Positions 16,710-62,068 of a stretch of DNA of 64,000 bases are shown in pieces. The notes beneath the pieces are model-generated. The model ran no database searches, had not been told where the DNA came from, and saw nothing but the letters and a program-made list of their open reading frames with translations. Position numbers and translations under genes: made by a program. The stretch spans positions 166,908 to 230,907 of the forward strand of contig NW_003314300.1 of the NCBI RefSeq assembly GCF_000143415.4, in the 5' to 3' direction. Source of the DNA: Selaginella moellendorffii. Its lineage: Eukaryota; Plantae; Lycopodiophyta. The stretch's first letter is position 1. Each line of letters begins with the position of its first letter.

Positions 16710-17120
16710 AAATTCTGTGCGTATCTCCGCATAAAAACTTACTCTTGTTCTGTAAGAAATAACTATAGCATCGATAACTATTTGATTTCTACTAGATATA
16801 AATGCTTGCCACACATTATACAAAGGGAAGCCAATTGGTATAGACAGATCAGCCACACAAATCCCACCCATAAAAAGTGGGGTAATGGTGTGAAATGAGA
16901 TTCTGACTAAGTTTTGATTTAAAGTAACTATTCCATCATCAATATAAGTAGAATAAATATAAGTTATCAATTGAATTTATTCATTAAACTCAATAAAGAT
17001 ATGGCATTTAATCTTGCAACAAAAATGGTTACAGGCTGAGGGGGATATGTATGTGGTGGTGGTGGTGGCGGCTGACTAAGTATAGGTAAAATCAAAGCTA
17101 ATATTTCAAAGATGAAACAA
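16710..17120 (-). pseudogene. 5' fragment of the B-lectin gene, frameshifted and lacking the lectin domain
   Basis: Near-identical to 61120-61560 with small indels giving TGA TAA near 16970. Similarity stops at ...cacagaattt. Confidence 0.85.
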
Positions 17121-18414
17121 ATATATAAATATATAAAGAAATGACAAAGAGTTTATAGGCTGGACATATATGAGATTTGTCAAATCCAAGACTAAGTCTA
17201 AGACGAGTCTAAAACTAAATTTGAAATTGAGTCCAAGTCACAATTATACAGGTTATAAGGTGAAACCATTTATCAATTTCGTACACCTAAGCATAAACCC
17301 TAATCCTGGCTTTCAAGAATGTGTTATTTCAGAAGAGAGTTTCTGATGGAGATGGGGAAGCCAGCTGAACATGTTGTCGGTAATATTGCCCTTTCTTTTG
17401 CTATTCAGATTTACTATAGAAGTCTCGATTTTTGCAAATTGGCAGGATGTATCATTGTGATCCCGAAGAGGCAAGGCCTCCTTCCTCAAAAACGCAATCT
17501 GAGGCCCTATTTGCTGGTCAGCCAAACATCAGTCAGCTACGAGAAAATGCTAGAAGGGTTGCTAGTGACTATTCACTTCGACAATTACAATATTGAGCCA
17601 CTTCACGAACTTCATCATCTGCCATGTAGTTTTTCAATCAGATTGTCCGTGTTTTCTAACTTCCATGTTTTGATTCTTGGCAATAGTCAACTTTTTCGGA
17701 AACAAGTCTGCAGACCGAGTCCCTTTAGACTCGTAGTGTACCGACAGACACATGTTTCTCATTGAGGAAGCTCTGGTCAGAGCAGAGGTGGTGGCTGATG
17801 CTGGTGGCCTTCCTGAATTCGGTGTCGATGGTCTATTGCCTCTATTCAGATTTGAGTTTCCCCACGCACGTCAGCTGTATGAACGCCAGGGTAAGCTCAA
17901 GCCCAGTTAAGTATATGCCTTATTGTATCTAATATTTATTTTGCAAAATGGTATAGTTTTACCTTTCAATCAGTTCCATGAGACCCACCCAGGGGAAGAA
18001 ACCAAGATCATAGGTCGAGAATCGATATCAATCCTTTTAATTCGTAATGGCCAAATAATACCATGAAATGTGACCATCATGGTCAACTGAAAAACGATCC
18101 AGGCAACGGGAGTATGTGTAAATTGCGTCCACTAGTCGAATGTTTCGGAGCTATTTGATCTTGAAGACGGTTGAGTTGTAACAGCAGCCCCGGTTTCACA
18201 AGTTACTACTTTTTTCTGGGCCAGCAAAAGAGTAAGAAAGAAGGGAAAACCTGACTGAGTAAATTCAACAGACCTTGCTCTGTGGAAGAGACAAAATGGG
18301 TTGTGTGGATCTCACGATCAACCACCAGAGTGAACTCGCAGCTTGGATAATATCCCACCAGTTTGAGGCCGGGGCTTCGAACAGAGGCGAAGCTATTGAG
18401 CCGCAATCGAGCAC

Positions 18415-18746
18415 GAGATCCCGTCTTCCTAACCCCCAAATCCGGGAAGGTAGCTTCTTGCTAGCATCGAGAATGCAAATTCAAAATTTACTAATGGTTC
18501 AAGTCAATGGTATGAAATTTTATTATCGGAACCCGGTTGCTGAGATGATGGCTATCAGGTAAGTGTAGAGGTAAACCGGTGTAGAAGACCCGGGTTCGAT
18601 GCCGAAGGGTCCAATCAACAAGGACTTTTAGGGAAAACTCTTGCTCTTTAAGTAGCCTTTTTTCTGATTCGCTAGCTCACTAAAGCAACTTAGACCAGTC
18701 AGTTAGCACCTCGGTTTCTCAAAGCATACGTTTCGGGTTCGATTCT
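18415..18746 (+). repeat. Repeat R, copy 1 (unclassified, with B-box-like motifs)
   Basis: Matches 22009-22376 directly, and 54904-55241 and 58781-59119 inverted. Confidence 0.9.
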
Positions 18747-18799
18747 GATCGATATTACAAAAGAATAAATTTGCAGCTAATTTTGGTTGGAGACTTCTG

Positions 18800-19871
18800 T
18801 GTCGCTGAAAATTTGTGGGCCTCGTATTCCTGAAACAATATCGTGTATCAAGTATTCGTGGCGTGGATGGCTATGCCGACGACGGTGCTCAACAATCATC
18901 CTCCGTTACTGCTCCCCTCATTGCTTGAAGCTCTCAAGAGAACCGGCGAGGAGCGTGTCGCTGCGTTTCACTTCCCAGGCCACGGCCTCAGCGCCTCTTC
19001 GATTTCCAAGCTTCTCGGAGCTCAACTCTTCCAGTTTGATCTCCCGGAGCTGCCAGGCAGCGAGGAGACGTTTCAATCCTCCCCACGTTTCGGCATTCCC
19101 AGCCATGGTTCTTGCTGGAGCAATGCCTCACTATGCTCTTCCTTGTTACGAGAGGCTGCAAGATTGTAAAGCACGAGAGAGTTAGCAAGTGCCTTAGAAC
19201 CTTGCAAAGCTCCAGTCCGAGTTACCTTCTCTTGGCCTCTCTCGATGCCGCAAGGGACCAGATGGTGCAGCAAGCGACGACCATCCAGCGTTTGATACAG
19301 CTCTGGAGCTGGCTTGCACAGCTCGACGACGCCTGAAAGAAATCCCACAAGTTTTAGTCCTTGATAGAAAAATGTGAGCTCGGCAGCCAAAGCTGATACC
19401 ATTTTTGATGAGCTTAGGATCACCATTGGTTTGTGGGAGCTCGGAGTCACAGGAACCCTTGCTGATGGCTTTCTGTGCGATAAATGCAAGGTGGTGTCCG
19501 AGCTTCCTCTTCTGAACTCCATAACTTTTGCTATGGGAGGCGGCACTAGCAGCAGCGACATTGAGAAACTTATCAAAGGCTTTCAAGACCTTTCGAGTTC
19601 TTCCAGATTGACAATAGGTTCTTATTCCAGATCCCGAGTGCCTGATTGTAACAAAAACGGATGGAAAGCATTAGTTAGTCCAAGCTATGCATTCTTTGCA
19701 GAAACTTACTGCTGCAAAGCTGATGAAGCAGTGGGTCTAGCGACTGCTGAGCTCGTGTGCCCGTATCCACCTGGTATTTCTGTGCTCTTTCCTGGAGAGC
19801 TCGTCTCACAGGAGGCCCTTGGCTATTTGAAGCAAGCCCATGCTTCAGGAATTACCATCAGTGGAGCATAA
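18800..19871 (+). pseudogene. Prokaryote-type (AAT-fold) Orn/Lys/Arg decarboxylase pseudogene
   Basis: FHFPGH, FDLPELPG, LQSSSPSYLLLASLDAAR, AELVCPYPPGISVLFPGE spread over several frames. The central PLP-lysine region is absent. Confidence 0.85.
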
Positions 19872-19999
19872 GGTCCAACTCTTTCCACACTTTCTTGAAG
19901 TGACATCACAAAGATCCAGCTGCAAAGAAAGCAACAAGACTTAGATAAATGCAAAGTCATAGAAACTTAATTACATACCGATCACTTCAAGGTTGTCAT

Positions 20000-21590
20000 A
20001 GTTTTCATTGTTTGAGCCTGAGTATATGTTTGCCATGAGAGCATAAGCTGTACCACCTTCATCGTCAACCTTTGATAGAGCATCAAAGGCTGCCTGTGGA
20101 AGAGGTGTGCTCCAGGATATGGATGGCTTTGCTTGGGGCTTGTTTCAATGCGATGATTGGAAAGGCAGGCTTTCCACCACCGCAAGTGCATCCTCCAGCC
20201 GATTAGCACGTCGAAGTAGATCAGCCATGGAGATTACATGCTCCACACTCGGACTAAGTCCATAGTCCAAGCACATCGCGTGAAAGTATTCCATCCCCTT
20301 GTCGACCAAACACCGCATCACTGTCCCCTTGACGGCTGTATCCTGCGATCAGTGCACTCCAAGACACTGCGTCCTTGTCTCCATCGAACACTCGGCAAGA
20401 TTCCACGATGTCACCACACTTACCATAGAAACTTATGAGCGAGTTTGCCACCACCGGAGCCCCCCAGCTTCTTCGATCAGACGATGGATTGTCTGTCCAG
20501 CCTGTAGTGCTCCAAGGCCCCCACAGGCCTTAAGTACCGATGCAAAAGCCTGCCGAGTCCGGTTTCAGTCCTTGGAGTCTTCCAGCCAATGCCTTCTCCA
20601 GCAACGCCACTTTCAAGAGTCTTCCATCCACAAGCCGAGCCTCTTCCTTCTCGGCCATATCCAAGCACGCCTGGAGAAAGGCCGCCAAAGTTCTCGAGCT
20701 GACGACCACGTCTAACGCTTGCATGGCCGTGAATAACTCGAGAGCCCGCTCGGCCTCGCCACCTTTTGCATATCCCATGATCATAACATTCCATGAGACC
20801 GAATTCCCCGCTCTATCATCCCATCGAAAACTCTCCAGCAATCCAGCAATCTCCCCCACTTTGCATACATATCCATCATACTGTTGGAGACAAAAACGCT
20901 GGACGAAATCCCCCTGTTCTTGCAAACTTCGAGTAAATCTCTCCGTCCCTGTCCAGCCATCCCAGATTCGTGCAAGCGTCGAGCACGGCCACCAGAGTCC
21001 GGCATTTGCCTCCGCTCCATCTTCCAAAAGCATAAGCTCAAAGAGCTCCAAGGCTAGCTCGTCTTCCCCTCCTTGCGATCAAGCGTTGATCATGGCACTC
21101 CACACAACCACGTCCTTTGTTCCCAACTTGGCAGCCTGGAAAATCTCTAGAGCTTCTCTCACGCTGCCACACTTTCCATAGAAATCCACCAGGGCGCTGG
21201 CCACGAACCTGTCCACCAAGAATCCACCAAGCTGGGAATGAAGAGCCATGCCTCTCTTGAGGCTCTTGAGCTTGATGATCCTCCCCTGTAAATCTCTCAC
21301 CCCTTTTTCTCTAGCGGCCAGCGAAGAACAGGCCTGGAGAGCCGTGACGAAGATCCGGCCGTTTGGATCCAACCAGCCGCGCAAAGAACTGGAGCGCGAG
21401 ACCCGGCTGGCCGCACCGCGCGTAGCCGCCGATGACGCAGTTCCACGACGCCGCGGTGCGCCGATCCATGGAATCGAAAATGCGGCGTGCCTCGTCCATC
21501 CTGCCCCGTTTCGCGTCCATGAATGACTGCGTTGATCAAGTCGATGTTCTTACTGGAGAGGAGATCGCGCGACATTATCATCTGATTTTA
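20000..21590 (-). pseudogene. PPR pseudogene
   Basis: PPR motifs (SWNCVIGGYARCG, ALVDFYGKCGS, VSWNVMIMGYAKGG) broken across frames. Confidence 0.88.
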
Positions 21591-22008
21591 CGGTTCTTGA
21601 GGATAATGCAAAACTGTGTTTGCTCCATGCAAACTCGAGAGAGAGTATCTTGTGAGATTTGATCAGGCCTCCCAAAACTTGGCCGGTTCTTCGGTATAGA
21701 CAGTCCGGTCCTGGATCTGCCAATCTACGATCCTTGCCTGGGTACATTTACAGACGACCATAGCGACGGGAATGAGCTACCAGTTGTTCTCCTCCCTGCA
21801 TCTTTCATAGAAACAGCGAGTGAGCGAGTGAGTGAGAAAATCTAGAACAAAACTCTCCTGTCAATTTTCCTTCCTTGGCCGAGTGGGGTTTCTTCTCCAT
21901 CTTCTACCGAGTGAACTCCCCACACCCAGAGCGCCACTATCGTCCTTGGATCCCACCATGCGGAGGTCGTCAAGTATTTTGGAAGAGGAGCGTCGCCCCG
22001 ATCCACCC

Positions 22009-22376
22009 AGATCCCGTCCTCTTACCTCTGAAATCGGGGAAGGGCTTCTGCCAGGCACGAAACGCTGGCCTCGAGCAGCGAGAATGCGGATCCGCGATCT
22101 AACAAAGTGCCATGGATGCCATATGGTTCAAGTAGATGGTATTGTTATTTTATTATTGGAACCCGGTTGCCGAGATGATGGCTATCAGGTAAGTGTAGAG
22201 GTAAACCGGTGTAGAAGACCCGGGTTCGATGCCGAAGAGTCCAATCAACAAGGACTTTTAAGCGAAAATCTTGCTCTTTAAGTAGCCCTTGTTCTGGTTC
22301 GCTAGCTCACTAAAACAACTTAGACCAGTCAGTTAGGACCTCGGTTTCCCAATGCATACGTTTCGGGTTCGATTCT
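22009..22376 (+). repeat. Repeat R, copy 2
   Basis: Direct repeat of 18415-18746. Confidence 0.9.
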
Positions 22377-22914
22377 TGCCAATGTTACTTGTAAAGCAAA
22401 GGTAAGAGACAAGAAATACTTTTAACGAATTGAAGGGACTTTATGAGAACTTGAGTTAAAGAAGCACAGTTCTCACCTCAGTATGAAATATTAGATAGAA
22501 TATACTTAAATAGTTTAAGAATATTTATCTAATCTAAAAAGGAATCCTTCCAGAATATCGACAAAGTTGACTTCTTGTCAAAGGGAAAAAGAAATGGTTC
22601 TTTCACGCGCATTCGTCTGCCGGAAGTAGAATGATCAGCGCGCGGGGAGAAAAAGTCTATGATTTCGCGTTTCCAAAGACCACGAATAATATAAGCGTGT
22701 CAACACCAATATCCAACAAAGTATGTGGGCGTCCATTGTCGGCTCGCGATCATTACCTCCATGATCCATCCGAGACGATGTAACTTTATTCAAAAATAAC
22801 GAAAGTGTCCGAAGATATGGTGGAATCTAAGAAGAAACTCATGAGAAATTTCGGCATGGTGAGACTGTACAAACCAAATAGTATCTCTTTGCGAGTATAT
22901 ATAACCTGAGATGA

Positions 22915-24194
<1,280 letters not shown>

Positions 24195-24532: not shown

Positions 24533-27500
24533 ATGATGGACGCGCGCGGGGGATTCATGGAGGATTTCGGGCAGAAGGTGGATCTCACGCAGCGGATCCG
24601 CGAGGTGCTGCTCAACTATCCCGAGGGGACGACCATCCTCAAGGAGATGATCCAGAACGCGGACGACGCGGGAGCGAGCCAGGTGTGTTTCTGTGTGGAT
24701 CGCCGCCGCCACGCCGTCGATTCCCTCGTCTCGCCGCCGCTGGCGCAGTGGCAAGGCCCCGCCCTCCTCGCCTACAACAATGCCGCCTTCACGGAGGAGG
24801 ATTTCCAGAGCATTTCCAGGATTGGCGACAGCAAGAAGCGCGGCCAGGCGTGGAAGACTGGTCGATTTGGGTAAGAAATTTTCTTCTTCCAAGATGCGCT
24901 TCTTTCTAAGCGAGCTTGTGGTTTCTAGGATTGGATTTAACTCCGTGTACCATCTCTCGGATCTGCCATCGTTTGTGAGTGGCAGTCACGTCGTCTTCTT
25001 CGATCCGCAGTGCCAGTTCTTGCCGAGTATATCGTCGCTAAATCCTGGCAAACGCATTGACTTTGTCACTTCCACGGCTCTCGAGAACTTTCCCGACCAG
25101 TTCTCGCCATACTGTGCTTTCGGCTGTGACATGCGACGTCCTTTCGGAGGTACTCTCTTTAGATTTCCATTGAGATCTGCCGAGCAAGCCGCCACCAGCA
25201 AGCTTTCCAAGCAGTCGTATACTTCCACTGACATGCTGGAGCTTCTCCGCGATTTATATCACGAGATTGTACAGGTGATGCTCTTCCTCAAGAACGTCGA
25301 GCGCGTAGAGTTTTACGAGTGGAGCGCCGGTTCTAGCTCCCCGACTCTGCTTTACTCGTGTGCCGTGAGGCTGCCAACTTCCGAGATAAGATCGCACAGG
25401 CAGCTGTTTCTGAGGCTTTCCAAGGGAAAAGACGCTGCTGCTAGCGAAGAAACGAAGGATGTTTTCAGATTGGAGCTGGTTACCAAGGCTTACACAGGGG
25501 CTGACAGCGGCAAGGAAAGTTTGAGCTCGTTTCTTATCTCGCAAGCTATGGGGTCTTCCGCTAGCAGAATTGGTGCTCTGGCTACAAATGCTTTCAAGAG
25601 TTATGGCCTGCGTCTTCTTCCTTGGGCATCAGTAGCTGCATCTATTTTACCCGGTAAGGTCAGTATATATTGTCTACTTGTTTTGAGAGAAATGATCTAA
25701 CCACCTTTGTAGGAATGGAGGTCGAAGGTCGCGCGTTTTGCTTCCTTCCGCTTCCTATAAAAACCGGGATGCCGTTTCACGTCAACGGATACTTCGAGCT
25801 CTCGGCAAATCGACGAGATATATGGCACGGTTCCGACATGGACAGGATGGGAAAGCTTCGCTCAGATTGGAACCAGTGTGTTTTGGAGGATGTTGCGGCA
25901 CTGTGTCTGCGACAGCTTCTTCTGGAAGCTCGGAAGCTTGGCCCGGGAGCCACGTACAGTTCTATGTGGCCACTGGGAAATTCGGGGGCTCCGTGGATCA
26001 AACTCGTGCAGCACTTTTATCGGAGCATTGCCGCAGAGCCACTTCTTCATTCCAGAGTTGCAGAAGGGAAATGGTTGTCACCAATGGAAGTTCTGTTCCA
26101 CGACGAAGAGTATGAGAAGGCCGAGGTACTGGCTGACGCACTTGTAGCGGATGGTTTGCCTCTTGTCCGTTTGCCGAAGCCGCTAAGAGACGCAGTCTTC
26201 AAGTTTTGCGATGCCGAGTTTAAAGTCGTCACACCATTTTCCGTGAGGACTCACTTCTTGAAGAGCAAGCGACAGAAGGGTCCAGCAGAGAGGTCTCATC
26301 TCTTTGCAATTCTCGACTACTGCTTATCGGATCTCGTAGACGAAGAAGCAGCAGAACATCTGAGAAGACTCCCTCTCGTTCCTTTACAAAGTCTGGGAAC
26401 AGGACGGTTTGCCTTAAAAGGCGAGGAGTGCTCATATTTTTTATGCACCGCCTTGGAGATCAGGCTGTTCAAAGGTATACCCGACAAGCTTGTCGACGAA
26501 AATCTTCCTCCCGGGCTGGTTGCGAGGCTCAACAACATTGCAAGAACAGGTCGGAGCAATATTTGTTTGATTGACGATACAACTTTGGCCGAGATTCTGC
26601 AGTACGTACTACCTCCTGAATGGAAAAATGGTGGTGAGATACGTTGGCAGCCTGGGCTTAGGAAGCAGCCTTCGAAAGAGTGGCTTGGTTTTTTCTGGGA
26701 GCATCTCGCTGCTCAACAACGAGATTTATCGAAGTTGCAGCAGTGGCCAATACTACCAACGACCACAGGGACGTTACGAAGACCTGTCCGTTTCTCGGGG
26801 ATTCTCAAAGGCGGCAAGATAAGCAGCAGTTTGGAAGGTGTTTTCATCAAAGCTGGCTGCTTGTTCTTGGACACACAGGTGACGCTCGACCATCCTCAGC
26901 TGTCGAGATATGTTCTTGATCCCACTGTCGCGGAAGTTTTGGATGCCATTGGATTCAGCGCCGCTAACAATCTCTCAAAACTTGCAGAGAGTTTTACTGC
27001 TCTCTCTGGTTTGGAAAGGAGAGAACTCAGGGCTTTTCTATACGACGTGTGCTGGGGTAGCAGGAATGAGATGAACGAGTCTCGTCTACAGATATTCAAG
27101 ACGCTACCGATATTCGAGGCCTACCGTGATTTGGGAACAAGGGATCTGGTTTTCGTTTCCTTAGAAGGTGGTAAGAAATTCTTGCCACCTAGTGGAGTGG
27201 ACGAGACACTCTTGGGACCGGACTGTTTGCATTCAAGTGGCTCACGGGAGCACGAAGTTTTGACGCAGCTGCTAGATGTCATGCAACTCAAGAAGGCAGA
27301 TTTTTTCAAATGGAGGATACTGAGCGACATAAGTAATCTTCCTACAGAGCTGCGGGACCTGTCAATGCTTCAAATTCTTCGTGAACTTCCGGAGCTAAGT
27401 GTCGAAGATCGTTCTCTCGTCGGTATTCTCAAGAAGCTCTCGTTCGTGCCTACCGGAGCCGGCAAGTTTCGAGCGCCAGATGCTCTTTACGACCCAGAGA

Positions 27501-30500
27501 TTCCGGAGCTTGTGAGCATTTTGGACAGCCAGCAGTTTTTTCCATCCCCCGACTACTCTAGTCCCGACGTCCTTCAGAGTTTGCGCCATCTGGGACTGAG
27601 AAGTAGCGTCACTCCAGACACTATACTGGCCAGTGCCCGAGCTATCGAGGGGCTCTCGGCAAGTGTTCCTGACCAGGCAACTTTACGAGGGCGTGTTCTA
27701 CTGTCGTACCTCGACAAGAACGCAAGCAAGTGGCTGCAAGAAGCAGGAACCAACTGGATACTTTCAATTCTCCAAGGCGAAAAGGACTCTACGCTGTCGA
27801 AGTTTTGGAGTGAACTGGCCAACATATGCTGGTGCCCGGTGCTACTGGAGCCACCTCACGATCAGATGCCTTGGCCAGTGGTCTCACAGTCTTTAGCACC
27901 ACCAAGGCTAGTGAGGCTGCCTTCCGATATTTGGCTTGTCTCGGCGACCATGCGAATACTAGACGGACAGTGCGACTCTCCAGGATTATGTCAACGTCTT
28001 GGATGGAGTTCCAAGCTAAGTGGCAATATACTGGCTGCTCAGCTACTGGAGCTTGGAAAAGGTGACAACTTCAAGCTGAGGAAAATTCTAGCTACAACTG
28101 TTCCGAAGATCTACTCTATGCTGAGCGATATGCTGGGAAGTGACGAGATGGAAATCGTGAAGGCCATTCTCGAAGACCGTTCCTGGATATGGGTTGGAAG
28201 CAGGTTCGCAATGGCCAGGGAAGTTGTTTTCGATGGAGCTTTGCACTTGACTCCTTATCTTCACGTCGTTCCAGCTGATCTCGCTGCTTTCAAGGAGCTT
28301 TTTCTGGAACTTGGGGTGAAGGAATCGCTAGACCCGGCAGGCTACAGTACGATCCTTGCTGTTATTGCAAGTGAGAAGTGTGGAGATCCCTTGGACTCTC
28401 GGCAACTAGCTGCGGCTATCTGGATCGTACAACATCTAGCAGACACGAACTTTGGCGAGCAGGGGAAGGAAATTGTTATTCCAGACTGCGATGGCATCCT
28501 CTTGCCGTCGTCTCAGCTTGTCTACAACGATGCCCCCTGGCTCGTGGCCTCCAAGGACATTCCAAACAAGAAGCTAGTGCATTCGAAGATTTCCAACGAC
28601 GTCGCCGAGAAAGTTGGTATCGCTTCCGTTCGAGAGTCGCTGCTTGCCAAAAGTGCCGACTTCGTGGACCTGGGACTGCATGGTGGTATGGAAGCCTTTG
28701 GACAGAGTGAGTCGCTGACAAGCCGGCTAAAACACATCGTAGAGATGTATGCGGACGGACCTGGGACGCTGTTCGAGCTGTTGCAAAACGCAGATGATGC
28801 CGGTGCCACGGAAGTGAGCTTTCTCCTCGACAAGTCTTCCTTCGGCACAAACTCCGTCCTCTCCCGGCAAATGGCTGACTGGCAGGGGCCAGCTCTCTAC
28901 TGTTACAACGATTCCGTTTTCAAGCCGGAGGACTTCTATGCAATATCACGCATCGGCCAGAACAGCAAGCTCGACAAGCCGTCCGCCATTGGGAGATTTG
29001 GCCTTGGCTTTAACTCTGTCTACCATTTCACCGACGTGCCAAGCTTTGTATCAGGTTCAACGATTGTGCTGCTTGATCCACACGCTGATAACCTTCCAGG
29101 CATCTCTCCTGCTCAACCAGGTTTGAAGATTAACTTCGTTGGCAAGGAACTGCTCAATCAGTTCCCTGATCAGTTTGAGTCTTTCCTCCTCTTTGGATGC
29201 GACCTCCAGAAGCCTTTTCTAGGCACTCTATTCCGTTTTCCGCTGAGGACAACAGTGACTGCTGCTCGGAGCGAAATAAAGCAGGATCCGTATCAACCTG
29301 AGGACGTCGTCACACTTTTCTCGGCTCTCAAGAAGTCTGCTGGCGAAGTTTTGCTGTTCCTCCGGCATGTAACGTCGATAAAGCTGTACGTACGTGACGG
29401 TTTACATGCCGAGGTTCAGGAGATATTCAAGGTTCACAGGGAAAATGCTGATTACCAGGAAACCAGCCTCTACGAGTTTGTCACTGGTAACACCCGGCAG
29501 AAATACGACAAGGAACAGTTTGTGAAGCGACTGGAAAAAACTGCAGACAAGCAGCTGCCTTGGTGTTGCGGGAAGATCAGGATAGAGGTAGCAGCTCCGG
29601 ATGGCAACTCTTCCTCGTCCTGGCTTATATGTAGCTCCTTTGGTGGAGGGAACGCAAAGGAGTTTGTCATATCGCCAGCTAACCGAAGCAGAGGATTCGT
29701 TCCATGGGCTGGGATTGCTGCCAGGATGTCCGAAGATGGCAGCATTGAAGTCAAAGAAGATGAAAGAGGTCCAGTGTCCGTGGAGGGCCGAGCATTTTGT
29801 TTCCTGCCTCTCCCGGTTGTCGTCGGGCTTCCAATACACGTAAATGGCTACTTCGAACTATCTGCAAATCGGAGAGATATATGGTATGGTGGTGACATGG
29901 TTGGAGGAGGAAAGCTCAGGTCGCAGTGGAACAGTTTTCTTCTTCAGGATGCAGCAGCTCCTGCGTATGCTCGGCTTCTTCATCGTGCTTCTCGCGAGCT
30001 GGGACCTTCTGCGAGTTATAGTTCACTGTGGCCAACTCAGAGCGTTGGAGAGCCATGGAAGCAGCTAGTTACGCAGGTTTATAAAGCTGTGATCGACTTG
30101 GAGGTGCCTGTTCTGTTCACAACGTTAAGAGGTGGCAAATGGATCTCTGCGAAACAGGCCGTGTTCCCAGACTTTTCATTCCCGGAGATGACCGAGCTTG
30201 GCAATGCTCTTGTGGAAATTGGCCTTCCATTGATATCAGTCCCTGAAGCCGTGACTACGAGGTTCCGAGAAGTGTGCCCGTCCTTGAAGTTTTTCTCGCC
30301 TCGTCTTCTACAAAGGCTGCTGATCGCCAGCAGGCGAACTTTAGAGAGGCGGATCAGCATTCTGGCTCTGAAGTACTCCCTCTCTGATGTCCAGAGCTCA
30401 GCGGATGAAAGCAAGCTATATGGCTTGGCCTTGGTTCCTCTATCAGATGGTTCGTTTGGAACGCTCAACTCAAGATCTACTGGGGAGAAGATTATATTAG

Positions 30501-41395: not shown

Positions 41396-41549
41396 AGTTA
41401 CGTCAAAGATCGCCAAACTTTCCATCGATCTTATTCGTAGAAGAATCCAATCCAGTGTACACTTTTTCGCTCGTAAATCCACTGGAGCTCCTTGAGCTCT
41501 TATAGATCCACAAACTTATATCTTAGATCTATACAAACCGAGAAGAAAC

Positions 41550-47418: not shown

Positions 47419-47672
47419 GTACCACTACAATGCCGTCCCTTAAAGACATATAGGAAACTCACATAAATGTTGAGCATCATCCCAAGAATGATATATAGCA
47501 ATCACCAGCTGATCTACACAATGGAAGGATTGGTAGATTGAGTGTGGAAATGGCTTAAGGGGAGAGAGATAAGGTGCGCTACAGTACCACTACAATGCCG
47601 TCCCTTAAAGACATATAGGAAACTCACATAAATGTTGAGCATCATCCCAAGAATGATATATAGCAATCACCA
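47348..47672. repeat. Tandem duplication, period 165 bp
   Basis: tctacacaatg...gtgcgctacagtacc...caatcacca occurs twice, nearly identical. Confidence 0.93.
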
Positions 47673-48019
47673 TAAAGTGATTAAACCAATAGTACACATC
47701 ATCCTTAGAATTCCCACAGAAGAACTTCAGCTAGACGTGAGGATTGGCAATAAGAGTAAGAGGAATTGTACCATGCATCATAAATGCTGTTATCAATTGA
47801 GTCTGATTGTTCAACTATAATTGCATAGCATTGAGCAATTGCACCAATTATTTCTCTAGAGTGAAAAGAGGAGGAGGTTGTTACTCTACCATAAAGATGA
47901 ATAAAAAGATAAAAACAAAAGAGAAAAAATTGAAAAAGCTATAAAGAAAGTGAGATAAAGTTAAATTTAAACCAAAATCCCAAATCCAAGCACTCTTTAA
48001 AGAAAATCAAAGATGCCCT

Positions 48020-48562
48020 TCACTTCCACCAATATGAGTGTATACAATATAGAAATAGAATACAGAAATATATATATCAATTAGCCCATCATATCAAGTG
48101 ATATATTACCTGCTGGGCTTGCATGATTGAAACATATGGAGTAAGTTGTTTTGACGGGTCATTCTACTTCATAATTCGACCATTGGAACTACATACCAAT
48201 ACATTGTCATGAGTCAGACCACCCATCAGCTTTTTTGCAAGAAATGCTTTCACTGACACTAAGACAACATTGGCAATTGTCAAATTTCCAATTCATCTAA
48301 AAGTCAATTCATTGAATTGACTTCAGTCTAGAAAACTTATTATTGTATATAAGTTATGGTTTTTGGGCTAATTGATATATATATATCTGTATTCTATTTC
48401 TATATTGTATACACTCATATTGGTGGAAGTGAATTAGTCTGACTCACGACAATGTATTGGTATGTAGTTCCAATGGTCGAATTATGAAGTAAAATGACCC
48501 GTCAAAACAACTTACTCCATATGTTTCAATCATGCAAGCCCAGCAGGTAATATATATCACTT
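48020..48562. repeat. Two interleaved inverted repeats (A-B-X-A'-B')
   Basis: 48020-48087 vs 48365-48432, and 48097-48219 vs 48437-48562. Confidence 0.9.
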
Positions 48563-50683: not shown

Positions 50684-51695
50684 TTATAAGCAACTAAAGA
50701 AAACGACTTGAAAAACGATCCATGGGGTTCAAATATAGAGGGAAAGGGTTCATGAACAAAAATGCACCCCCTTTTCCAATCAATTAAGAGTCTTGGGATA
50801 ATTAGGGTTAAGTGTCCTTGGGTTTAAATAGTACTGGGCTTGGTGACATTCAAGAGCTTACACATACAAAACAATACATACACACAAGAAACTATCATCA
50901 AGATAACAAAGACTCATCATGCTTGCTTATTATGTATTGTTATGGGGGGCTACTACATTTTTGGTGGATTGCCTAAGAATGAAGATTGAGCATAAAGATT
51001 GTAAGGGAAGAGTATAAATATTGCATAAGCTGCACTACCTTCACTAAATCACAGTTGGATAGTAAGATATAGAAATAATTAAAATCTAAAAAAAGACAAA
51101 AGTGATATTAAGATCCTAAATCTTTGAGAACATTACTATAAATAAAAGAAAGTATAGAAGTGCATTAGGACGTACCTTATTTGTCATGGGATGATATTGA
51201 GTGGCTAAGATGAAAAACTCTTCAAACTAAGTCAAGAAAGAAATTATTTTAGAATCTTAAGTCTCTTGAGATATTTTAAATCAATCAAGCACTCATATTG
51301 CTTTTGGAGGGGGGAGAGAGAGAGAGAGAGGGAGAGGGAGAGAGAGAGCTTTATGATAAGCAAAGTACACCCTTCTACAAAAGGTAGTGACTTAAACCCT
51401 CTATGTGCCACATGTCCATAGGACAGTGATGTGGAACTTGAGGTTCAGAGCCTTGGGCCACTAAATGAAAGAATGATGCCAAACTCCCAAGCATAGAGGT
51501 ATAAGCTCCTGAGTTTGGACTTCCTGAGAGGTCACCCAGCCTAGTACTATTCAAACCCAAAGACACTTAACCCTAAATATCCCAAGACCCTTAATCGATT
51601 AGAAAAGAGGGTGCACTTTTATTCATAGGCCCTTTCCCTTTATATTTGAACCCCATGGACCATCTCTCGAGTCATTCTTTTTGGTTGCTTACAAT
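50684..51695. repeat. Diverged ~165-bp inverted repeat pair enclosing a (GA)n tract
   Basis: 50684-50848 is the reverse complement of ~51531-51695 with many transitions. GA microsatellite at 51314-51348. Confidence 0.8.
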
Positions 51696-52489
51696 CTACC
51701 ACACTTCCCTGCAAGTTCATGCCCTTGTGAACGGAAGTTGAGAGCTGTAGCTCTCTTGAAAGCCCCGCTCTCTTAACATCCTACCCCTCAGGTCGAGCCC
51801 AGCAGGAGCAAACTAGACCAGCCAGATGTCAATCAATATGTGGTGTGATTCCCCTAGCCAGCCAATAGATGAAAAACTGTCCTAGAGCAACTAACATCCC
51901 AATGCTACAACTAATACGCAAAATGAAGCCAAATGGAGTCTAGCACTATTTTAATATACCAGTGGCCTAATGCGAGGACATGGGTACTCCACCAACTAAC
52001 ATGGTGTGAAGTTTGGGCTTAAACCCAAGCCAGACGCAGAACAAAGACAGGCACACAAGCAGGAGTTAAACTATACCTCAGGTTTGTTGGCCATACCCGA
52101 CCTACCCACTATCCCTACTATACATTTGGAACCACCCACAGCGCCCCGCCCCCCCCTGGCTAAGTATGCTTAGTTAATAACACGTAGGAATTTCGTCCTT
52201 ATGCTCGTCCGGTCTAAGTACATTCGATAACTCCACTAGCACAAGAAAAATTGATAAAAAGTCTAGCAATACTGACCTCCTACTGTTGTAGTAGTAAGGA
52301 AAGAGTGTCTGCAAGGATTAGCCGACAGGTAACTTTCAATACTTGAAGTCACATTCGCAATAGTTATTATTAGAACCCATAATAGCTAAATTGATTTTTT
52401 TTTTTTTAAATTATAGGGGTAGATTTAGGGGAGTAGAGTACAATGTATAACTAAAAAATGATTCATGGATATTGGTAATACAACAATAA

Positions 52490-53760
52490 TTATATGGGTA
52501 CACAATCTCAAGTATCACGAGTCATGTGAAATCAATTGGTATAAAATGAGGTTAGTAGCTTTAGGCTACACACAATGAGCTAAGATCAATTACAATAAAA
52601 AAATTTCACCTGTAGTTAAAATGATTTCTACATGATTAATTCTTGACATAGCTAACCATCTAGATCTTGAGGTTGAATAAATAGATGTTAAAAACACATT
52701 TTTAAATGGTAAATTGGAATACCTAGTATACATGCATCAACCTTCTGAGTTTGAAGTATGTGGAAAAGAACACTTTATTTATTTGTAAGCTTTAGTGGTC
52801 TAATTATACAATCCCCAAAAATATTACAACACCTTAAACAAGTTTTTTTTAATACTTGGTCTATGCAAAAGTAGATTGGAATCTCTACTATTGTATTTGA
52901 GAGTCAATAATGTATGTGTCTACATCAATTATCTCATCAAGGCTAAAAATACATTGAATTTATGATGGCTAAAGAAGCAACTTCAAGATGATAGATCTAG
53001 GTAAAATTTTATTTTATCTTGGCTTATGAGTTTCTTATAATAGGGAACACTACATCTTGAGAATTCATCAACAAAAGTATATATGCAATCTCATATAGAA
53101 TATGACAAAAAAAATTTACTACACACATTGCCCCAACTCTAGCAGTAAAGTTCCACAAACTTTTCAAAGATGATAATCCACATTCTGGGAGGTAGAAAAA
53201 GGAGATGATGTAATTACTATATCAGAACATGGTTAGTGCTTTGTTGTACCTTGCAATAGTGAGTCAAAGCAGCAGTTGTTTCTTGTGTATGCAACTTCAT
53301 GTAGAACCTAGGGAAGAGACATTAGTATTTGTGTTCATTGATGTTTGCATTTCAAATCTAATATTTCTTAGTAGTCAATGAATCTATAGTGCCTCCTTTA
53401 CTGCTTTACTTACATTGTATTACATCATTGATAATGTCACTATTCATTATTTCTAACTCCGCATAACAACATTAGAGTTTAAACATATACTTAGTTGTTA
53501 ATCTGCAGTCATCAAGGTCTCCAGCAAGATTAGTGTCAACCTATGGAACTAGTGTTCCTACTCCGATTTCTCACTTTATTTGGGAACATGTGGAGCGAGA
53601 GGAGATCAAACTCAAGTACCACTCAACAATTTAAATAATTGCATACGTTATCTTCCTAGAGAGAGCTGAGATCTAAAGACGTTTTACAAACTGAAAAGAT
53701 TGTCAGATAGAGTGGGACTGTTAGAGTAGCAGGAATCAATGTGACAAGAAGATAGGGATC
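52490..53760 (+). mobile_element. Degenerate Ty1/copia RT-RNase H relic with PPT and LTR start
   Basis: YKMRLVALGYTQ, ISPVVK, IDVKNTFLNGKL..VYMHQP, HFIWEHVERGEIKLKY. Purine tract agagtgggac followed by TGTTAGAG at ~53719. Confidence 0.85.
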
Positions 53761-53809
53761 TTAGAGAGATTTAAGGAGATGAACACATATATAAACCTGT
53801 ACTTCTAAA

Positions 53810-54470
53810 GCATTCATATTGTAGTATTTTTCCCTTCATCCTGTCCATCAGAGTGACTTTCAGAGATCCACACTTCATGTAAAAGTCGAATATCGTGCTT
53901 GCAAGAAACCTGTTAGACTTGAGTCCCCTCATGGAAAGCTCTGAATGGAAAGCCATTCCTCTCTAAGAGACACCACTGTCACCATTTTTCCAGCCAACTC
54001 CCTGCCGTCTTCTCCCGCTGCCAAGCCTGCACAGGCACCAAGAACAACCACAAAAGTTCTCGTGTTGGAAGCCTTGATCCAGTATGATGGAGAAAAGTTC
54101 CAGTGCCAAACCCTTTTCTCCACTCCAAGCATAAGCCTTGATGATCACATTCCAGGACACCACGGTTCACTGCTTCATGCAGTCGAAAACTCACCGAGCT
54201 TGCTCTCACATCTGGCGTACATGTCGATGGACGTGTGAGCCAGGAAAACATTCCCATCTCGTCTGCATTTGGCGAGCACCTGTTCAAGTTCCTCCTTACT
54301 GCCGCAAGACTTTAGTGTTGCGAGGAGTGCTCGTTCGTGTCGCACTATCTTTCTCTTCAAGTTGTCGTGGGAGTTGAATGCCTGTTGATCATCTAAGCTA
54401 CAATTTTCCCCGGACTGCACATTTATATTCCCGCATCTGTGACGCTCAATGATACATCTAGCAAAGAACA
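53810..54470 (-). pseudogene. PPR gene fragment
   Basis: GNVFLAHTSIDMYARC, VVSWNVIIKAYAWSGEKGLALELF and NRFLASTIFDFYMKCGSL in different frames. Confidence 0.8.
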
Positions 54471-55859
54471 AGGAAACATGACTTAGAGAGCTTTGTCGAA
54501 TTTAAAAGCCACGTACCTCTCAAGGAAATTCCATCGCCTGCCGCAGCTACCATGTAGTTCCTTCCATCGCTCCAGAATGCTACTGCTTATACGAACAGCA
54601 GGATTTTCCTTTAAATACCTCGAAGAAAAACCATTCTGGACGAGACTACACACCTTGCTGATGGAAATCTTACTGTTCCCCAAAGCAATTGTAGCGATTT
54701 TTCTGGATTTTCACGGCAGTTGCAAAGAAGAGCCAGGAGTCGCGAGCAGGCCAAATCGTGAAAGAACCCTATTAGAATAATGCCTACATTTTTCAAATCA
54801 CTCGCGACCATCGCCCTTTTCTCTAAAGGTAAAGGTAAGCCGCGCTCGCAATCGATTCGTTTTACTTAATGTAGTGGTCTTTGCTTTACAAGTAACATTG
54901 GCAGGAATCGAACCCGAAACGTATGCTTAGGGAAACCGAGGTCCTAACTGACTGGTCTAAGTTGTTTTAGTGAGCTAGCGAACCAGAACTAAAAGTCCTT
55001 GTTGATTGGACCCTTCGGCATCGAACCCGGGTCTTCTACAACGGTTTACCTCTACACTTACCTGATAGCCATCATCTCAGCAACCGGGCTCCAATAATAA
55101 AATAACAATACCATCTACTTGAACCATATGGCATCCATGGCACTTTGTTAGATCGCGGATCCACATTCTCGCTGCTCGAGGCCAGCGTTTCGTCCTTGGC
55201 AGAAGCCCTTTCCCGATTTCAGAGGTAAGAGGAGGGGATCTAGATGGATTGGGGCGACGCTCCTCTTCCAAAATACTTGACGACCTCCGCGCGGTCGGAT
55301 CCAAGGACGATAGTGGCGCTCTGGATGTGGGGAGTTCACTCAGTGGTGGATTAAAAGATGGAGAACCGGCCCAAGGAAGGAAAATTGACAGGAGAGTTTT
55401 GTTCTAGATTTTCTCACTCACTCGCTCACTCGCTGTTTCTATGAAAGATGCAGGGAGGAGAACAACTGGTAGCTCATTCCCGTCGCTATGGTCGTCTGTA
55501 AATGTACCCAGGCAAGGATCGTAGATTGGCAGATCCAGGACCGGACTGTCTATACCGAAGAACCGGCCAAGTTTTGGGAGGCCTGATCAAATCTCACAAG
55601 ATCTCTCTCTCAGCATCCAGCGAGTTTGCATAGAGCAAGCACAGTTTTGCATTATCCTCCTATTGTTCTTACGCTTTTTTTTCCTGTAAAGAATGAAAAC
55701 GAACAGAAAAATGGTCATGAGTTATATAAAATTCTCTCAACTATGCTTCGAAAATTTTCCACAGCGCCGCTGATTAGCCCACATCTGCCCAGATTTGTTT
55801 TTAATTGCCAGGATTTGTTCTTCGTCTCTAAACCTCAAGAACCCTAAAATCAGATGATT

Positions 55860-57440
55860 GCATGGATTCAATCCAGCTGGACGGCGACGGCCGCGAGCGC
55901 GATCTCCTCTCCAGTAAGAGCATCGGCTTGATCAACGCAGTCATTCATGGACGCGAAACGGGGCAGGCACGCCGCATTTTCGATTCCATGGATCGGCGCA
56001 CCGCGGCGTCGTGGAACTGCGTCATCGGCGGCTACGCGCGGTGCGGCCATCGCGCTCCAGTTCTTTCCGCGGCTGCATGCCGAGGGGTTGGATCCAAACT
56101 TCCGGATCTTCGTCACGGCTCACCAGGCGTGTTCTTCACAGGCCGCTAGAGAAAAGGGGGTGAGAGATTTACAGGGGAGGACCATCAAGCTCAGGAGCCT
56201 CAAGAGAGGCTTGGCTCTTCATTCCCAGCTCCAGAGTGGTGGATTCTTGGTAGACAGGTTCGTGGCCGGCGCCCTGGTGGATTTCTATGGAAAGTGTGGC
56301 AGCGTGCTCTAGAGATTTTCCTGGCTGCCAAGTTGGGAACAAAGGACGTGGTTTTGTGGAGTGCCATGATCAGCGCTTGCTCGCAAGGAGGGGAAGACGA
56401 GCTAGCCTTGGAGCTCTTTGAGCTTATGCTTTTGGAAGATGGAGTGGAGGCGAATGCTCGGACTCTGGCGGCCGTGCTTGACGCTTGCACGAATCTGGGA
56501 TGGCTGGACAGGGGCGGAGAGATTTACTCGAAGTTTGCAAGAACAGGGATGGGGATTTCGTCCAGCGTTTTTGTCTCCAACATGTATGCAAAGTGGGGCA
56601 GATTGCTGGATTGCTGGAGCGTTTTCGATGGGATGATAGAGCGGGATTTGGTCTCATGGAATGTTATGATCATGGGATATGCAAAAGGTGGCGAGGCCGA
56701 GCGAGCTCTCGAGTTATTCACGGCCATGCAAGCGTTAGACGTGGTCGTCAGCTCGAGGACTTTGGCGGCCTTTCTCCAGGTGTGCTTGGATATGGCCGAG
56801 AAGGAAGAGGCTCGGAAGACTCTTGAAAGTGGCGTCGCTGGAGAAGGTATTGGCTTTTCATTCCCGGTTTCTTGACAGGTTGGAAGACTCCAAGGAGTGA
56901 AACCGGACTCAGCAGGCTTTTGCATCGGCACTTAAGGCCTGTGGGGGTCTTGGAGCACTACAGGCTGGACAGACAATCCATCGTCTGATCGAAGAAGCTG
57001 GGGCCGAGAACTCTCCGGTGGTGGCAAACTCGCTCATAAGTTTCTACAGCAAGTGTGGTGACATCGTGGAATCTCCCCGAGTGTTCGATGGGTTGGACGT
57101 GTCTTGGAGTGCACTGATCGCAGGATACAGCCGTCAAGACGCGGTGTTTGGTCGACAAGGGGATGGAATACTTTCACGCTATGTGCTTGGACTATGGACT
57201 TAATCCGAGTGTGGAGCATGTAATCTCCATGGCTGATCTACTTGGACGTGCTAATCGGCTGTAGGATGCGCTTGCGGTGGTGGAAAGCCTGCCTGTGGAA
57301 GAGGTGTGCTCCAGGATATGGATGGCTTTGCTTGGGGCTTGTTCAATGTGGTGATTGGAAAGGTAGCCTTTGGTGCTCTATCAAAGGTTGACGATCAAGG
57401 TGATCAGGCTCAAACAATGAAAACTATGACAACCTTGAAG
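55860..57440 (+). pseudogene. PPR pseudogene (paralog of 20000-21590)
   Basis: Same motifs with partly different frameshifts. Confidence 0.88.
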
Positions 57441-57559
57441 TGATTGGTACGCAATTAAATTTCTATGACTTTGGATTTATCTAACTCTTGTTGTTTTCTT
57501 TGCAGCTGGATCTTTGTGATGTCACTTCAAGACATGAAGTGTGAAAAGAGTTGGATCTT

Positions 57560-58730
57560 ATGCTTAATTCCTGAAGCATGGGCTTGCTTCAAATAGCCAA
57601 GAGCCTCCTGTGAGACGAGCTCTCCAGGAAAGAGCACAGAAATACCGGGTGGATACGGGCACACGAGCTCAGCAGTCGCTAGACCCACTGCTTCATCAGC
57701 TTTATAGCAGTAAGTTTCTGCAAAGAATGCATCTCTTGGACTAACTAGTGCTTTCCATCCGTTTTTGTTACAATCAGACACTCAGGGTCTGGAATAAGAA
57801 CCTATTGTCAATCTGGAAGAACTCGAAAGCTCTTGAAAGCCTTTGATAAGTTTCTCAATGTCGCTGCTGCTAGTGCCGGCTCCCATAGCAAAAGTTATGG
57901 AGTTCAGAAGAGGAAGCTCGGACACCACCTTGCATTTATCGCACAGAAAGCCATCAGCAAGGTTCCTGTGACTCCGAGCTCCCACAAACCAATGGTGATC
58001 CTAAGCTCATCAAAAATGGTATCAGCTTTGGCTGCCGAGCTCACATTTTCTCTATCAAGGACTCAAACTTGTGGATTTCTTTCAGGCGTCATCGAGCTGT
58101 GGAAGCCAGCTCCAGAGCTGTATCAAACGCTGGATGGTCATCGCTTGCTGCACAACTCATCTGGTCCCTTGCAGCATCAAGAGAGGCCAAGAGAAGGTAA
58201 CTCGGACTGGAGCTTTGCAAGGTTCGAAGGCACTTGCTAATTGCTTTACAATCTTGCAGCCGCTCATAACAAGGAAGAGCATAGTGAGGCATTGCTCCAG
58301 CAAGAACCATGGCTGAGAATGTGGGCGTTCCTGGGGAGGATTGAAACGTCTCCGCGCTTGCAGCAGCTCATCACCGCCGCTTGAATTCCACACGTAGAGC
58401 CGTTTACCAAGAACCACGAATACCCGGCTCCGAAAAGCTCCGCAGTCATTTGCTGCGCTTTGGCTATGGCTTCTTGTGGCCAGGCCTGGCAGCTCCGGGA
58501 AGAGTTGAGCTCCGAGAAGCTTGGAAATCGAAGCCTGAGAAGTGAAACGCAGTGACACGCTTCTCTTGAGAGCTTCAAGCAATGAGGGGAGCAGTAACGG
58601 AGGATGATTGTTGAGCACCGTCGTCGGCATAGCCATCCACGCCATGAATCGCTCAAGCACGAATACTTGATACACGATGTTGTTTCAGGAATGCGAGACC
58701 CACAAATTTTCATCCAGCGACACAAAAGTC
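57560..58730 (-). pseudogene. Orn/Lys/Arg decarboxylase pseudogene, second copy
   Basis: Retains EAIAKAQQMTAELFGAGYSWFLVNGSTCGIQAAVMS..LPRNAH (absent from the left copy), plus SSSPSYLLLASLD and CPYPPGI. Frameshifted. Confidence 0.87.
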
Positions 58731-61108
58731 ATGTGATAGAATAACTCAAGCTGAAACTTAGTCTTTTGTAATATCGATCAGAATCGAACCCGAAACGTAT
58801 GCCTTGAGAAACCGAGGTCCTAACTGACTGGTCTAAGTTGTTTTAGTGAGCTAGCGAACCAGAACAAGGGCTACTTAAAGAGCAAGATTTTTCCCTAAAA
58901 GTCCTTGTTGATTGGACCCTTCGGCATCGAACCCGGGTCTTGTACAACGGTTTACCTCTACACTTACCTGATAGCCATCATCTCAGCAACCGGGCTCCGA
59001 TAATAAAATAACAATACCATTGACTTGAACCATTAGTAAATTTTGAATTTGCATTCTCGCTGCTCGAGCGCCCTAGCAAGAAGCCCTTCCCGGATTTGGG
59101 AGTTAGGAGGACGGGATCTCGTGCTCGATTGCGGCTCAATCACTTTGCCTCTGTTCGAAGCCCCGGCCTCAACCTGGTGGGATATTATTCAAGCGAGTGT
59201 GGAAATGTTGAGTGGCTCGCAAGTTCACTCTGGTGGTTGATCGTGAGATCCACACAACCCATTTTTTCTCTTCCACAGAGCAAGGTCTGTTGAAACTTAA
59301 TCACCCTTCTTTCTTGCTCTTTTGCTGGCCCAGAAAGAAGTAGTAATAACGCATGGATTGTGATCCACAGATGTTCCGAAACCTGGGCTGCTGTTAGCCG
59401 CAACTCAACCGTCTTCAAGATCGAATAGCTCCGAAACATTCGACTAGTGGACACAATTTACACATACTCCCGTTGCCCGGATCGTTTTTCAGTTTGACCA
59501 TGATGGCCACATTTCATGGTACTATTTGGCCATTACGAATTAAAAGGATTGATATCGATTCTCGACCTATGATCTTGGTTTCTTTCCCTGGGTACTGATT
59601 GAAAGAAATGGCATAGCACTTGGGCGGTAAAACTAAACCATTTTGCAAAATAAATATTAGATACAATAAGGCATATACTTAACTAGTAGCGGGCCTGAGC
59701 TTACCCTGGCGTGCGTGGGGAAACTCAAATCTGAATAGAGGCAATAGACCATCGACACCGAATTCAGGAAGGCCACCGGCATCAGCCACCACCTCTGCTC
59801 TGACTAGAGCTCCCTCGATGAGAAACATGCGTCTGTCGGTACACTACGGACTCGGTCTGCAGACTCGTTTCCGAAAAAGCTTACTATCGCCAAGAATCAA
59901 AACATGAAAGTTAGAAAACACAGACAATCTGATTGAAAAACTACATGGCAGATGATGAAGTTCGTGAAGCGGCTCAATATCGTAATTGTCGAAGTGAATA
60001 GTCACTGGCAACCCTTCTAGCATTTTCTTGCAGCGGACAGATGTTTAGCTGACCAGCAAATAGGGCCTTTTCAGCTTGGCAGATTGTGTTCTTGAGGAAG
60101 GAGGCCTTGCCTCTTCGGGATCACGATGATACATCCTGCCAATCTGCAAAAATCAAGACCTGTATAGTAAATCTGAATAGCAAAAGAAAGGGCAATATTA
60201 CGAGTGACATGTTCAGCTGCCTTCCCATCTCCATCCCAAACTCTCTGAAGGAATAACAGATTCTGGAGCTTGAAATAATGCCTCTGGGAGCATGGACTCA
60301 TACCCTTTTGGATTAACTAAGAGTTTTATTAGATTAGTTTTTTGAACCACTATAAAAATAGGGTTTTGAGGATTTTGTACTCAAATTGTTGTATACGAAC
60401 CATTTTTTCTTCTCTATTATTTTAGTATTTCATTAATAATTTTATCTTCTTTTGACGACAATGAATTATAATCCATTATCAATCTTTTGAAATTTTGTTA
60501 TGGAAAATGATAAGCTTTCTTGTAATAGAAGTGTTGAAGCATGGAGCCAAAGGGATTTTACCAGCCTTTAGAAGATGCTAGATTATGTATTATTTGACCA
60601 TTTATCTCTATCTAAAAGAGGAATTAAAAGCTTCAAATTCAAGAAGTGAGGAAAGAGTATGTAGGATTTCAAAAGAAATTAATTGAGTGCATAGAAGATA
60701 TATTTGTAATTTCAGGGAAATGTGTGACTTTGTACAACTTTTATGTGTGCTTATTTAACAATCTAATGCTTTAAATAGAACTTTAAACAAGGTTTGTCCT
60801 CATTACAAAAGAATTAAAGTTTAATTATAGGATATCCTAGAATATACATGAATATTCTAGGAAGCAAATAAAAAATTCTTGGTCAAAAACTTTAAGTGTT
60901 CTTCTGCTAGATTTAAGAATTAGCATAAATACCTAAGTTTAACTAATTTTTAGTAGTGGTATTAATACTTTTAAAAATATATTTTAAAGTATAAATAGAC
61001 TCTAAAATTGTTAGATATGAGCATTAATATTAATATTTTATTTAACCAAATGCATGCTATAGTAGACATAGAAGGCATAAAATCTTTTTGACAGATCAAT
61101 TTTTCAAT

Positions 61109-62068
61109 ATGGTCTTAAATATTTGTTTCATCTTTGAAATATTAGCTTTAATTTTACCTATATTTAGTCAGCAACCACCACCACCACATAGATATCCCCC
61201 TCAGCCTGTAACCATTTTTGTTGCAAGATTAAATGCCATATCTTTATTGGAGTTCAATGAAGTTATAAATTCAATTGATACTTATATTTATTCTACTTAT
61301 ACTCATGATGGAATATTTGGAATTGGAAGTAATTCTATTGTAGTCACTTTAAATCGAAACTTAGTCAGAATCTCATTTCACATCGTTGCCCCACTTTTTA
61401 TGGGTGGGATTTGTGTGGCTGATCCGTCTATACCAATTGGCTTCCCCTCGTATATTGTGCGACAAGCATTTATATCTATTAGAAATCAAATAGTTACAGA
61501 TGCTACAGTTATTTCTTACAGAACAAGAGTAAGTTTTTATGCAGAGATACGCACAGAATTTATGAATTTTGCAATAGCCTATGAACTAATAAGACTACAA
61601 ACTGATTTACAATACAGTAGTAGTTATCATCTGAAAATACCAGATAGTATTTATCATGAAGATCATGATATAAGTGATTGTTGGAGCTTTGGATTTTCTC
61701 TTATAAGCAACAATAATAAAGTTCCAGGATCATATCTTCCAGCTGGAAATAGTTTAAACTCCATAAATGGGTTATACAGGCTCACCATACAACCTAATGA
61801 TTGCAAACTAGTATTAGTTAATAAAAGAGATGGTGTGATCTTGTGGAGTAGTAGTCATTCTTATGAGCCTGTTGTTGGATGTTTTGCACATCTTCAACAT
61901 AATGGGAAGCTTGTCATAAAAAGCACTGCAAATAATATTTTTTGGGAGACTGATGTAGAATGTAGATTGAAAGATTGTTTTATAATTGCAAGTCTTGTGG
62001 TAAAAGGGGAAGGGACTGTATTCATTTATAACTTAGAAACTCAAATAGTGTTATGGAAAGCTATCTAG
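61109..62068 (+). CDS. Secreted bulb-type (B/GNA) lectin domain protein, AT-rich and intronless
   Basis: Signal-like MVLNICFIFEILALILPIFS, poly-Pro, then LPAGNSLNSINGLYRLTIQPNDCKLVL...ILWSS...LQHNGKLVI...FWET...EGTVFIYN...VLW. Confidence 0.75.
   Translation: MVLNICFIFEILALILPIFSQQPPPPHRYPPQPVTIFVARLNAISLLEFNEVINSIDTYIYSTYTHDGIFGIGSNSIVVTLNRNLVRISFHIVAPLFMGGICVADPSIPIGFPSYIVRQAFISIRNQIVTDATVISYRTRVSFYAEIRTEFMNFAIAYELIRLQTDLQYSSSYHLKIPDSIYHEDHDISDCWSFGFSLISNNNKVPGSYLPAGNSLNSINGLYRLTIQPNDCKLVLVNKRDGVILWSSSHSYEPVVGCFAHLQHNGKLVIKSTANNIFWETDVECRLKDCFIIASLVVKGEGTVFIYNLETQIVLWKAI

Follow-up and report, generated by a model that had tools for sequence, protein, structure and literature searches.

Why do two arms of about 6 kb, each a string of gene remnants, face one another in inverted orientation across 32.5 kb of the genome of Selaginella moellendorffii? 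The arms lie in a 64,000-nucleotide stretch of contig NW_003314300.1 (assembly GCF_000143415.4, positions 166,908 to 230,907 of the forward strand; hereafter the window), and a preliminary description made from the letters of that stretch had offered two answers: a gene-capturing mobile unit of Pack type or Helitron-like kind that had been copied locally, or the scar of an inversion with duplicated ends. Our analysis indicates that native chromosomal DNA was probably duplicated once, locally and in inverted orientation, to give the arms: a segmental duplication, not a mobile element. The source segment would have comprised the first 151 codons of a lectin-like gene with the DNA upstream of them, about 1 kb of unclassified DNA, and two dead genes lying between old copies of a repeat that we call R. 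The reversed copy lies at a distance of 32.5 kb, with an SNF2-type helicase gene on one side and a peroxidase gene on the other. Coordinates of all features are collected in Table 1.

To define the arms, we combined repeat finding and self-BLASTN over the 64-kb window with a global alignment. The first two returned a single chain of inverted matches in which 16710-22401 is the colinear reverse complement of 54879-61561. The global alignment was extended 400 bp past each end of the arms and identity was scored per 100 columns; values of about 90% gave way to background precisely at 16710/61561 and at 22401/54879. The preliminary description had reported sharply bounded, colinear reverse complements, and all three approaches agree with it, the right end being placed at 61561. 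The terminal words that it quoted were also correct in the nucleotide view: the outer end reads AAATTCTGTG... (the reverse complement of ...CACAGAATTT) and the inner end reads ...GTAAAGCAAAG. Once poorly aligned stretches had been dropped, the arms were 95.4% identical over 5107 well-aligned columns, with 234 substitutions and 63 indel events, a similarity far above chance. Arms of at least 1 kb, at least 90% identical and composed of part of a native gene, pseudogenes and intergenic DNA rather than of transposon sequence constitute a segmental duplication.

The outer end of the right arm showed what kind of boundary the duplication has. Lectin sequence makes up the outermost 420-450 bp of the arms. 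On the right, an intact lectin-like open reading frame (ORF) stays open through position 61561 in DNA of about 32% GC. Its only database relative was SELMODRAFT_428061, a 324-residue bulb-type lectin-domain protein of S. moellendorffii, to which it is 36% identical over residues 11-319 and with which it is colinear across the arm boundary at codon 151. Because the intact ORF continues across the boundary and remains colinear with its paralogue, the right outer end is a duplication breakpoint inside a native gene and not a transposon terminus. The left lectin copy contains in-frame stops, has no ATG and meets unrelated sequence. Given these defects and the native junction on the right, it is the left arm that is derived, at least at its lectin end. 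A direction could also be assigned to two of the larger indels; in both cases the left arm lost sequence, 125 bp of decarboxylase coding sequence in one and 177 bp between two GAGG words in the other. The lectin-like ORF had no identical entry in the protein collection, unlike the PLC-X (phospholipase C) gene of the same window, and it may be an unannotated gene.

The contents of the arms gave the relative age of their parts. Pfam and tblastn placed these, from the outer to the inner end, in the order lectin 5' part, unknown segment, R1, decarboxylase, pentatricopeptide repeat (PPR) sequence and R2. This upholds the parts list given earlier, as well as the mixed orientation and base composition attributed to the arms (GC of the segments ranges from 0.27 to 0.55). 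The parts had been described as gene fragments; the decarboxylase and PPR sequences are instead decayed pseudogenes of nearly full length. The decarboxylase remnant extends from the N-terminal motif region into the C-terminal domain and has an internal loss common to both arms. In each arm, the Pfam profile OKR_DC_1, a mainly bacterial family, was matched at positions 66-116 and then at 253/261-294, together with the C-terminal domain. No match was found in either arm to the profile positions between 116 and 253, and only about 70 nucleotides are present where about 140 profile positions belong. We take the lost core to be the part that carries the lysine that binds pyridoxal phosphate. We used Pfam profile coordinates here, as a phmmer search of the PDB placed the C-terminal piece alone on solved structures. 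The PPR homology is about as long as a typical PPR gene without introns, and the two pseudogenes stand tail to tail on opposite strands. Across the three frames, 23 of the 27 stop codons in the PPR copies are common to both arms. Because the core loss, the TAG at 56147 that interrupts the main PPR reading frame and most stop codons are common to the two arms, the decarboxylase and PPR genes were dead before the duplication took place. The unknown segment (about 1 kb) and the junction flanks matched no Pfam family, and a 153-codon ORF in the left-arm version of that segment is disrupted in the right arm and is therefore not conserved.

The repeat R is likewise older than the arms. R1 and R2 are 62-66% identical in their 5' half and 91-94% identical in a core of about 265 bp, whereas the partner of each in the opposite arm matches it at 94-97% identity. 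As the two repeats resemble one another less than they resemble these partners, R1 and R2 predate the arm duplication. We considered two identities for R. It contains two GGGTTCGAT words, which resemble a tRNA box B, and it may belong to a family similar to short interspersed nuclear elements (SINEs). Nevertheless, ARAGORN reported no tRNA in R, and Rfam gave nothing at gathering level, only chance-level matches at E values of 3-10; the proposal of a tRNA-derived SINE was dropped and R is treated as unclassified. No further copy of R occurs in the 64-kb window. We also rejected R1 and R2 as long terminal repeats (LTRs). Their similarity is uneven, the arm runs 1.6 kb past R1, and TG..CA ends accompanied by a matching 5-bp target-site duplication (TSD) are missing; the sole TG/CA placement found in the R ends is flanked by the 5-mers CAGAG and AAGGT, which do not match.

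The junctions also suggest how the duplication was made. In the nucleotide view, no microhomology was seen at the arm junctions. Because homology ends abruptly and without visible microhomology, the sequence suggests that breakage followed by non-homologous end joining produced the duplication. The mechanism that we prefer, and hold only tentatively, is a staggered-break inversion of the spacer. The spacer would have flipped, and its two ends would carry inverted duplicates because the stretch between the staggered breaks was filled in at both. In such an event a single ancestral segment would stand behind both arms, the peroxidase side of the spacer would originally have adjoined R2 and the lectin gene, and the novel junctions would be 16709/16710 and 54878/54879. 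Inverted duplicates of unique sequence with abrupt junctions, as expected of an inversion with duplicated ends, were found at both ends of the segment. The second of the two earlier answers, the inversion scar, is fully viable and is one of our two preferred mechanisms, and the first, the mobile unit, is not upheld. The other mechanism belongs to the same class: the right arm itself would be the source, and a reverse copy of it would have been joined into a break between the SNF2-type and peroxidase genes without any change to the spacer. We regard this as possible if somewhat doubtful. A gene or element split by the left arm would prove such a copy-and-insert event, and none was recognisable at the junction flanks.

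Considering that the arms differ by about 4.6% plus indels, we estimated when they separated. At a generic plant rate, roughly 7e-9 per site per year, the duplication would be about a few million years old. In one place the arms share an identical tract of 232 bp. When we placed the same number of arm differences uniformly in simulations and recorded the longest identical run, 232 bp was reached in 0 of 5000 runs (mean of the longest run, 104 bp; 99.9th percentile, 200 bp). The second- and third-longest identical runs were unremarkable, the next after 232 bp being 87 bp. This pattern suggests that gene conversion has probably transferred at least one short tract between the arms. Flipping of the spacer by recombination between the arms is plausible in principle, because arms of 5-6 kb share 95% identity and the 232-bp tract hints at exchange; a gene-conversion tract is, for its part, no evidence of inversion. 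The stronger proposal is that the arms are active recombination substrates, that the 32.5-kb block occurs in both orientations among haplotypes or populations and that the 232-bp tract is the footprint of this exchange. We consider it unlikely.

Several points weigh against a one-off local duplication with the history proposed above. An inversion of the spacer relative to its ancestor would be read from the one present arrangement. The identity of the 232-bp tract could reflect local constraint instead of gene conversion. The 3' end of R2 coincides with the inner arm end, as would be expected, too, of a unit terminated by a repeat element. Further copies of the arm with the same ends may exist beyond the 64-kb window, the range searched, in which none was found. 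Finally, arms of about 6 kb around only 32.5 kb differ in scale from the duplications associated with large-scale inversions in Drosophila, which measure at most about 1.9 kb, with a median of 321 bp (Ranz et al. 2007, PLoS Biol 5:e152, PMC1885836). This larger size counts mildly against the isochromatid form of the staggered-break model.

Could the arm be a non-autonomous transposon carrying gene fragments, of the Pack-MULE, Pack-CACTA or Helitron type, that was copied locally, so that both arms are insertions? Its remnants of unrelated genes, in both orientations and of mixed GC content, are what gene-capturing elements contain, and its ends are sharp, the inner one falling at the end of R. 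We searched the termini for the marks of such elements. Local alignment for terminal inverted repeats (TIRs) over the 150 bp at the ends of each arm gave scores of 8 and 7, below the medians of 10 and 9 for shuffled sequence. The flanking 10-mers revealed no shared TSD, either around the left arm (GCCGATGGTG / GTAAGAGACA) or around the right arm (ATGTAGTGGT / ATGAATTTTG). The 5'-TC and 3'-CTRR ends of Helitrons were absent from the arm read in one direction (AAATTCTGTG...GTAAAGCAAAG) and in reverse (CTTTGCTTTAC...CACAGAATTT), and Pfam found no transposase domain in the arm ORFs scanned. The preliminary description had itself seen no transposase, TIR or TSD at the ends, and the terminal alignments, flanking 10-mers and Pfam scan are in accord with it. 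Moreover, the right outer end lies in an intact colinear gene, which means that at least the right arm is not an insertion bounded there. Nor can R delimit a mobile unit, as R1 and R2 are direct repeats that are not LTRs and the arm continues well beyond R1. Against this evidence, a Pack-type or Helitron-like origin of the arms is quite unlikely.

An assembly artefact, in which a haplotig or chimeric read was placed in reverse and one arm is unreal, deserves mention, as the S. moellendorffii assembly contains two haplotypes. The arms nevertheless differ by 4.6% substitutions, 63 indels and one internal segment that is not homologous, whereas the two halves of a foldback artefact are nearly identical and no 32-kb spacer parts them. 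The arms are too diverged, and the spacer (32,477 bp) too long, for a foldback artefact, and the window contains no N or gap, with both arms joining their unique flanks seamlessly. We therefore judge an artefact of any of these kinds very unlikely. That the whole of 16710-61561 is a giant composite transposon, with terminal inverted repeats of about 6 kb and the peroxidase-sacsin-KAB1-PLC block as cargo, is scarcely credible: topology alone speaks for it (long inverted terminal repeats flanking 32.5 kb), and its outer flanks show no TSD (GCCGATGGTG versus ATGAATTTTG), its right end cuts an intact gene, and its interior consists of ordinary conserved plant genes with no transposase among the ORFs scanned.

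The spacer had been described as 32.5 kb of intact genes. This holds for about two-thirds of it; the remainder includes about 10 kb of AT-rich, repeat-laden DNA. Lycophyte and bryophyte sequences rank among the database matches to the PLC-X gene of the spacer, which, like the lectin paralogue, point to S. moellendorffii as the source. In the sacsin-like gene, 25721-25922 and 29780-29981 form a weak direct repeat (69% identity), consistent with repeated sacsin domains. The AT-rich block contains two foldbacks resembling miniature inverted-repeat transposable elements (MITEs), one at 48019-48562 (a 545-bp unit with arms of about 200 bp that are 97-99% complementary) and the other at 50679-51699 (169-bp arms at 85%, with 683 bp between them), and a 165-bp unit occurs twice in tandem at 47344-47672. 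ORFs around the PPR-like remnant at 54050-54217 were not recognised by Pfam. Upstream of the arms, 6420-7556 and 10715-12492 are related by an older direct duplication (69-75% identity in three colinear blocks), of which 6420-7556 overlaps an ORF with matches to major facilitator superfamily (MFS) transporters (6297-6977).

Table 1. Features of the inverted arms and the spacer between them, in window coordinates (dot, no strand).
Feature	Position	Strand	Details
Left arm, derived copy	16710-22401	+	5692 bp; from repeat finding, self-BLASTN and global alignment
Dead lectin copy, codons 3-151	16710-17128	-	In-frame stops, no start codon; runs into unrelated sequence
Left segment without homology to the right arm at the same position	17129-17312	.	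184 bp
Unknown segment, left arm	17313-18327	.	No Pfam match; no ORF conserved between arms
Repeat R1, left arm	18328-18772	+	
Decarboxylase pseudogene (OKR_DC_1, Orn/Lys/Arg), left arm	18800-19900	+	Extra 125-bp deletion
PPR pseudogene, left arm	20022-21565	-	About 1.5 kb
Identical 232-bp tract	21647-21878 and 55371-55602	.	Candidate gene-conversion tract
Repeat R2, left arm	21909-22401	+	3' end is the inner arm end
Spacer	22402-54878	.	32477 bp; about 21 kb of genes and about 10 kb of AT-rich DNA
Class III peroxidase gene	22999-24194	+	Two exons
Sacsin-like gene	24693-38601	+	Very long
Aldo-keto reductase gene, KAB1-like	from 39053	+	
PI-PLC-X gene	41553-42542	-	100% identical database entry
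AT-rich repeat-laden DNA	about 44000-53900		29-37% GC; MITE-like foldbacks; almost no ORFs
PPR-like remnant	about 54050-54217, within 53900-54811	-	Just inside the inner end of the right arm; adjoins the AT-rich block
Right arm, native at outer end	54879-61561	-	6683 bp; from the same alignments and the lectin-like ORF crossing the outer boundary
Repeat R2, right arm	54879-55341	-	
PPR pseudogene, right arm	55895-57345	+	In-frame TAG at 56147 common to the left arm
Decarboxylase pseudogene, right arm	57500-58730	-	OKR_DC_1 positions 66-116 and 261-294; C-terminal domain 66-112
Repeat R1, right arm	58754-59194	-	
Unknown segment, right arm	59195-60267	.	
Right AT-rich segment	60268-61114	.	847 bp, GC 0.27; directly upstream of the lectin ATG; no left-arm homology
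Intact lectin-like gene	61109-62068	+	319 codons; signal-peptide-like start; weak B_lectin match; arm boundary at codon 151

The duplication is an ordinary structural scar without evident effect on intact genes, and it puts 5.7 kb of dead DNA upstream of the peroxidase gene. Its value is that it shows cleanly, and with a divergence (about 4.6%) from which an age can be estimated, how local duplications arise and then erode in a small plant genome poor in repeats. It is informative in that one junction is native, both cargo pseudogenes are older than the copying and two deletions are attributable to the derived copy.

Three known systems resemble this locus. Like plant Pack-MULEs and gene-capturing Helitrons, each arm packs remnants of unrelated genes, in mixed orientation, into a few kilobases. 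Unlike them, the arms lack TIRs, TSDs and Helitron termini, and one arm end lies inside an intact native gene; and where those elements carry short exon-intron snippets, the remnants here are decayed genes of nearly full length. The arms also resemble inverted low-copy repeats that can mediate inversion by non-allelic homologous recombination, being at least 1 kb long, at least 90% identical, inverted and separated by a unique spacer, and signs of gene conversion between copies were found here too. Compared with repeats that mediate inversion, they offer a modest substrate, as their longest identical tracts are 232 and 87 bp.

The third system is the Drosophila inversions cited above. In 17 of 29 of these, non-repetitive sequence flanking the breakpoints is duplicated in inverted orientation (Ranz et al. 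2007, PLoS Biol 5:e152, PMC1885836). Often one breakpoint alone is duplicated there, with one copy decaying (PMC1885836). The locus described here resembles the Drosophila staggered-break cases in its inverted duplicates of ancestrally unique gene parts, one copy of which is decaying, and in its abrupt junctions. It differs in that the orientation of the spacer is known from the present arrangement alone. If the spacer were found in the opposite orientation in the other haplotype or in a sister species, the locus would be a small-scale plant case of the staggered-break mechanism of Drosophila.

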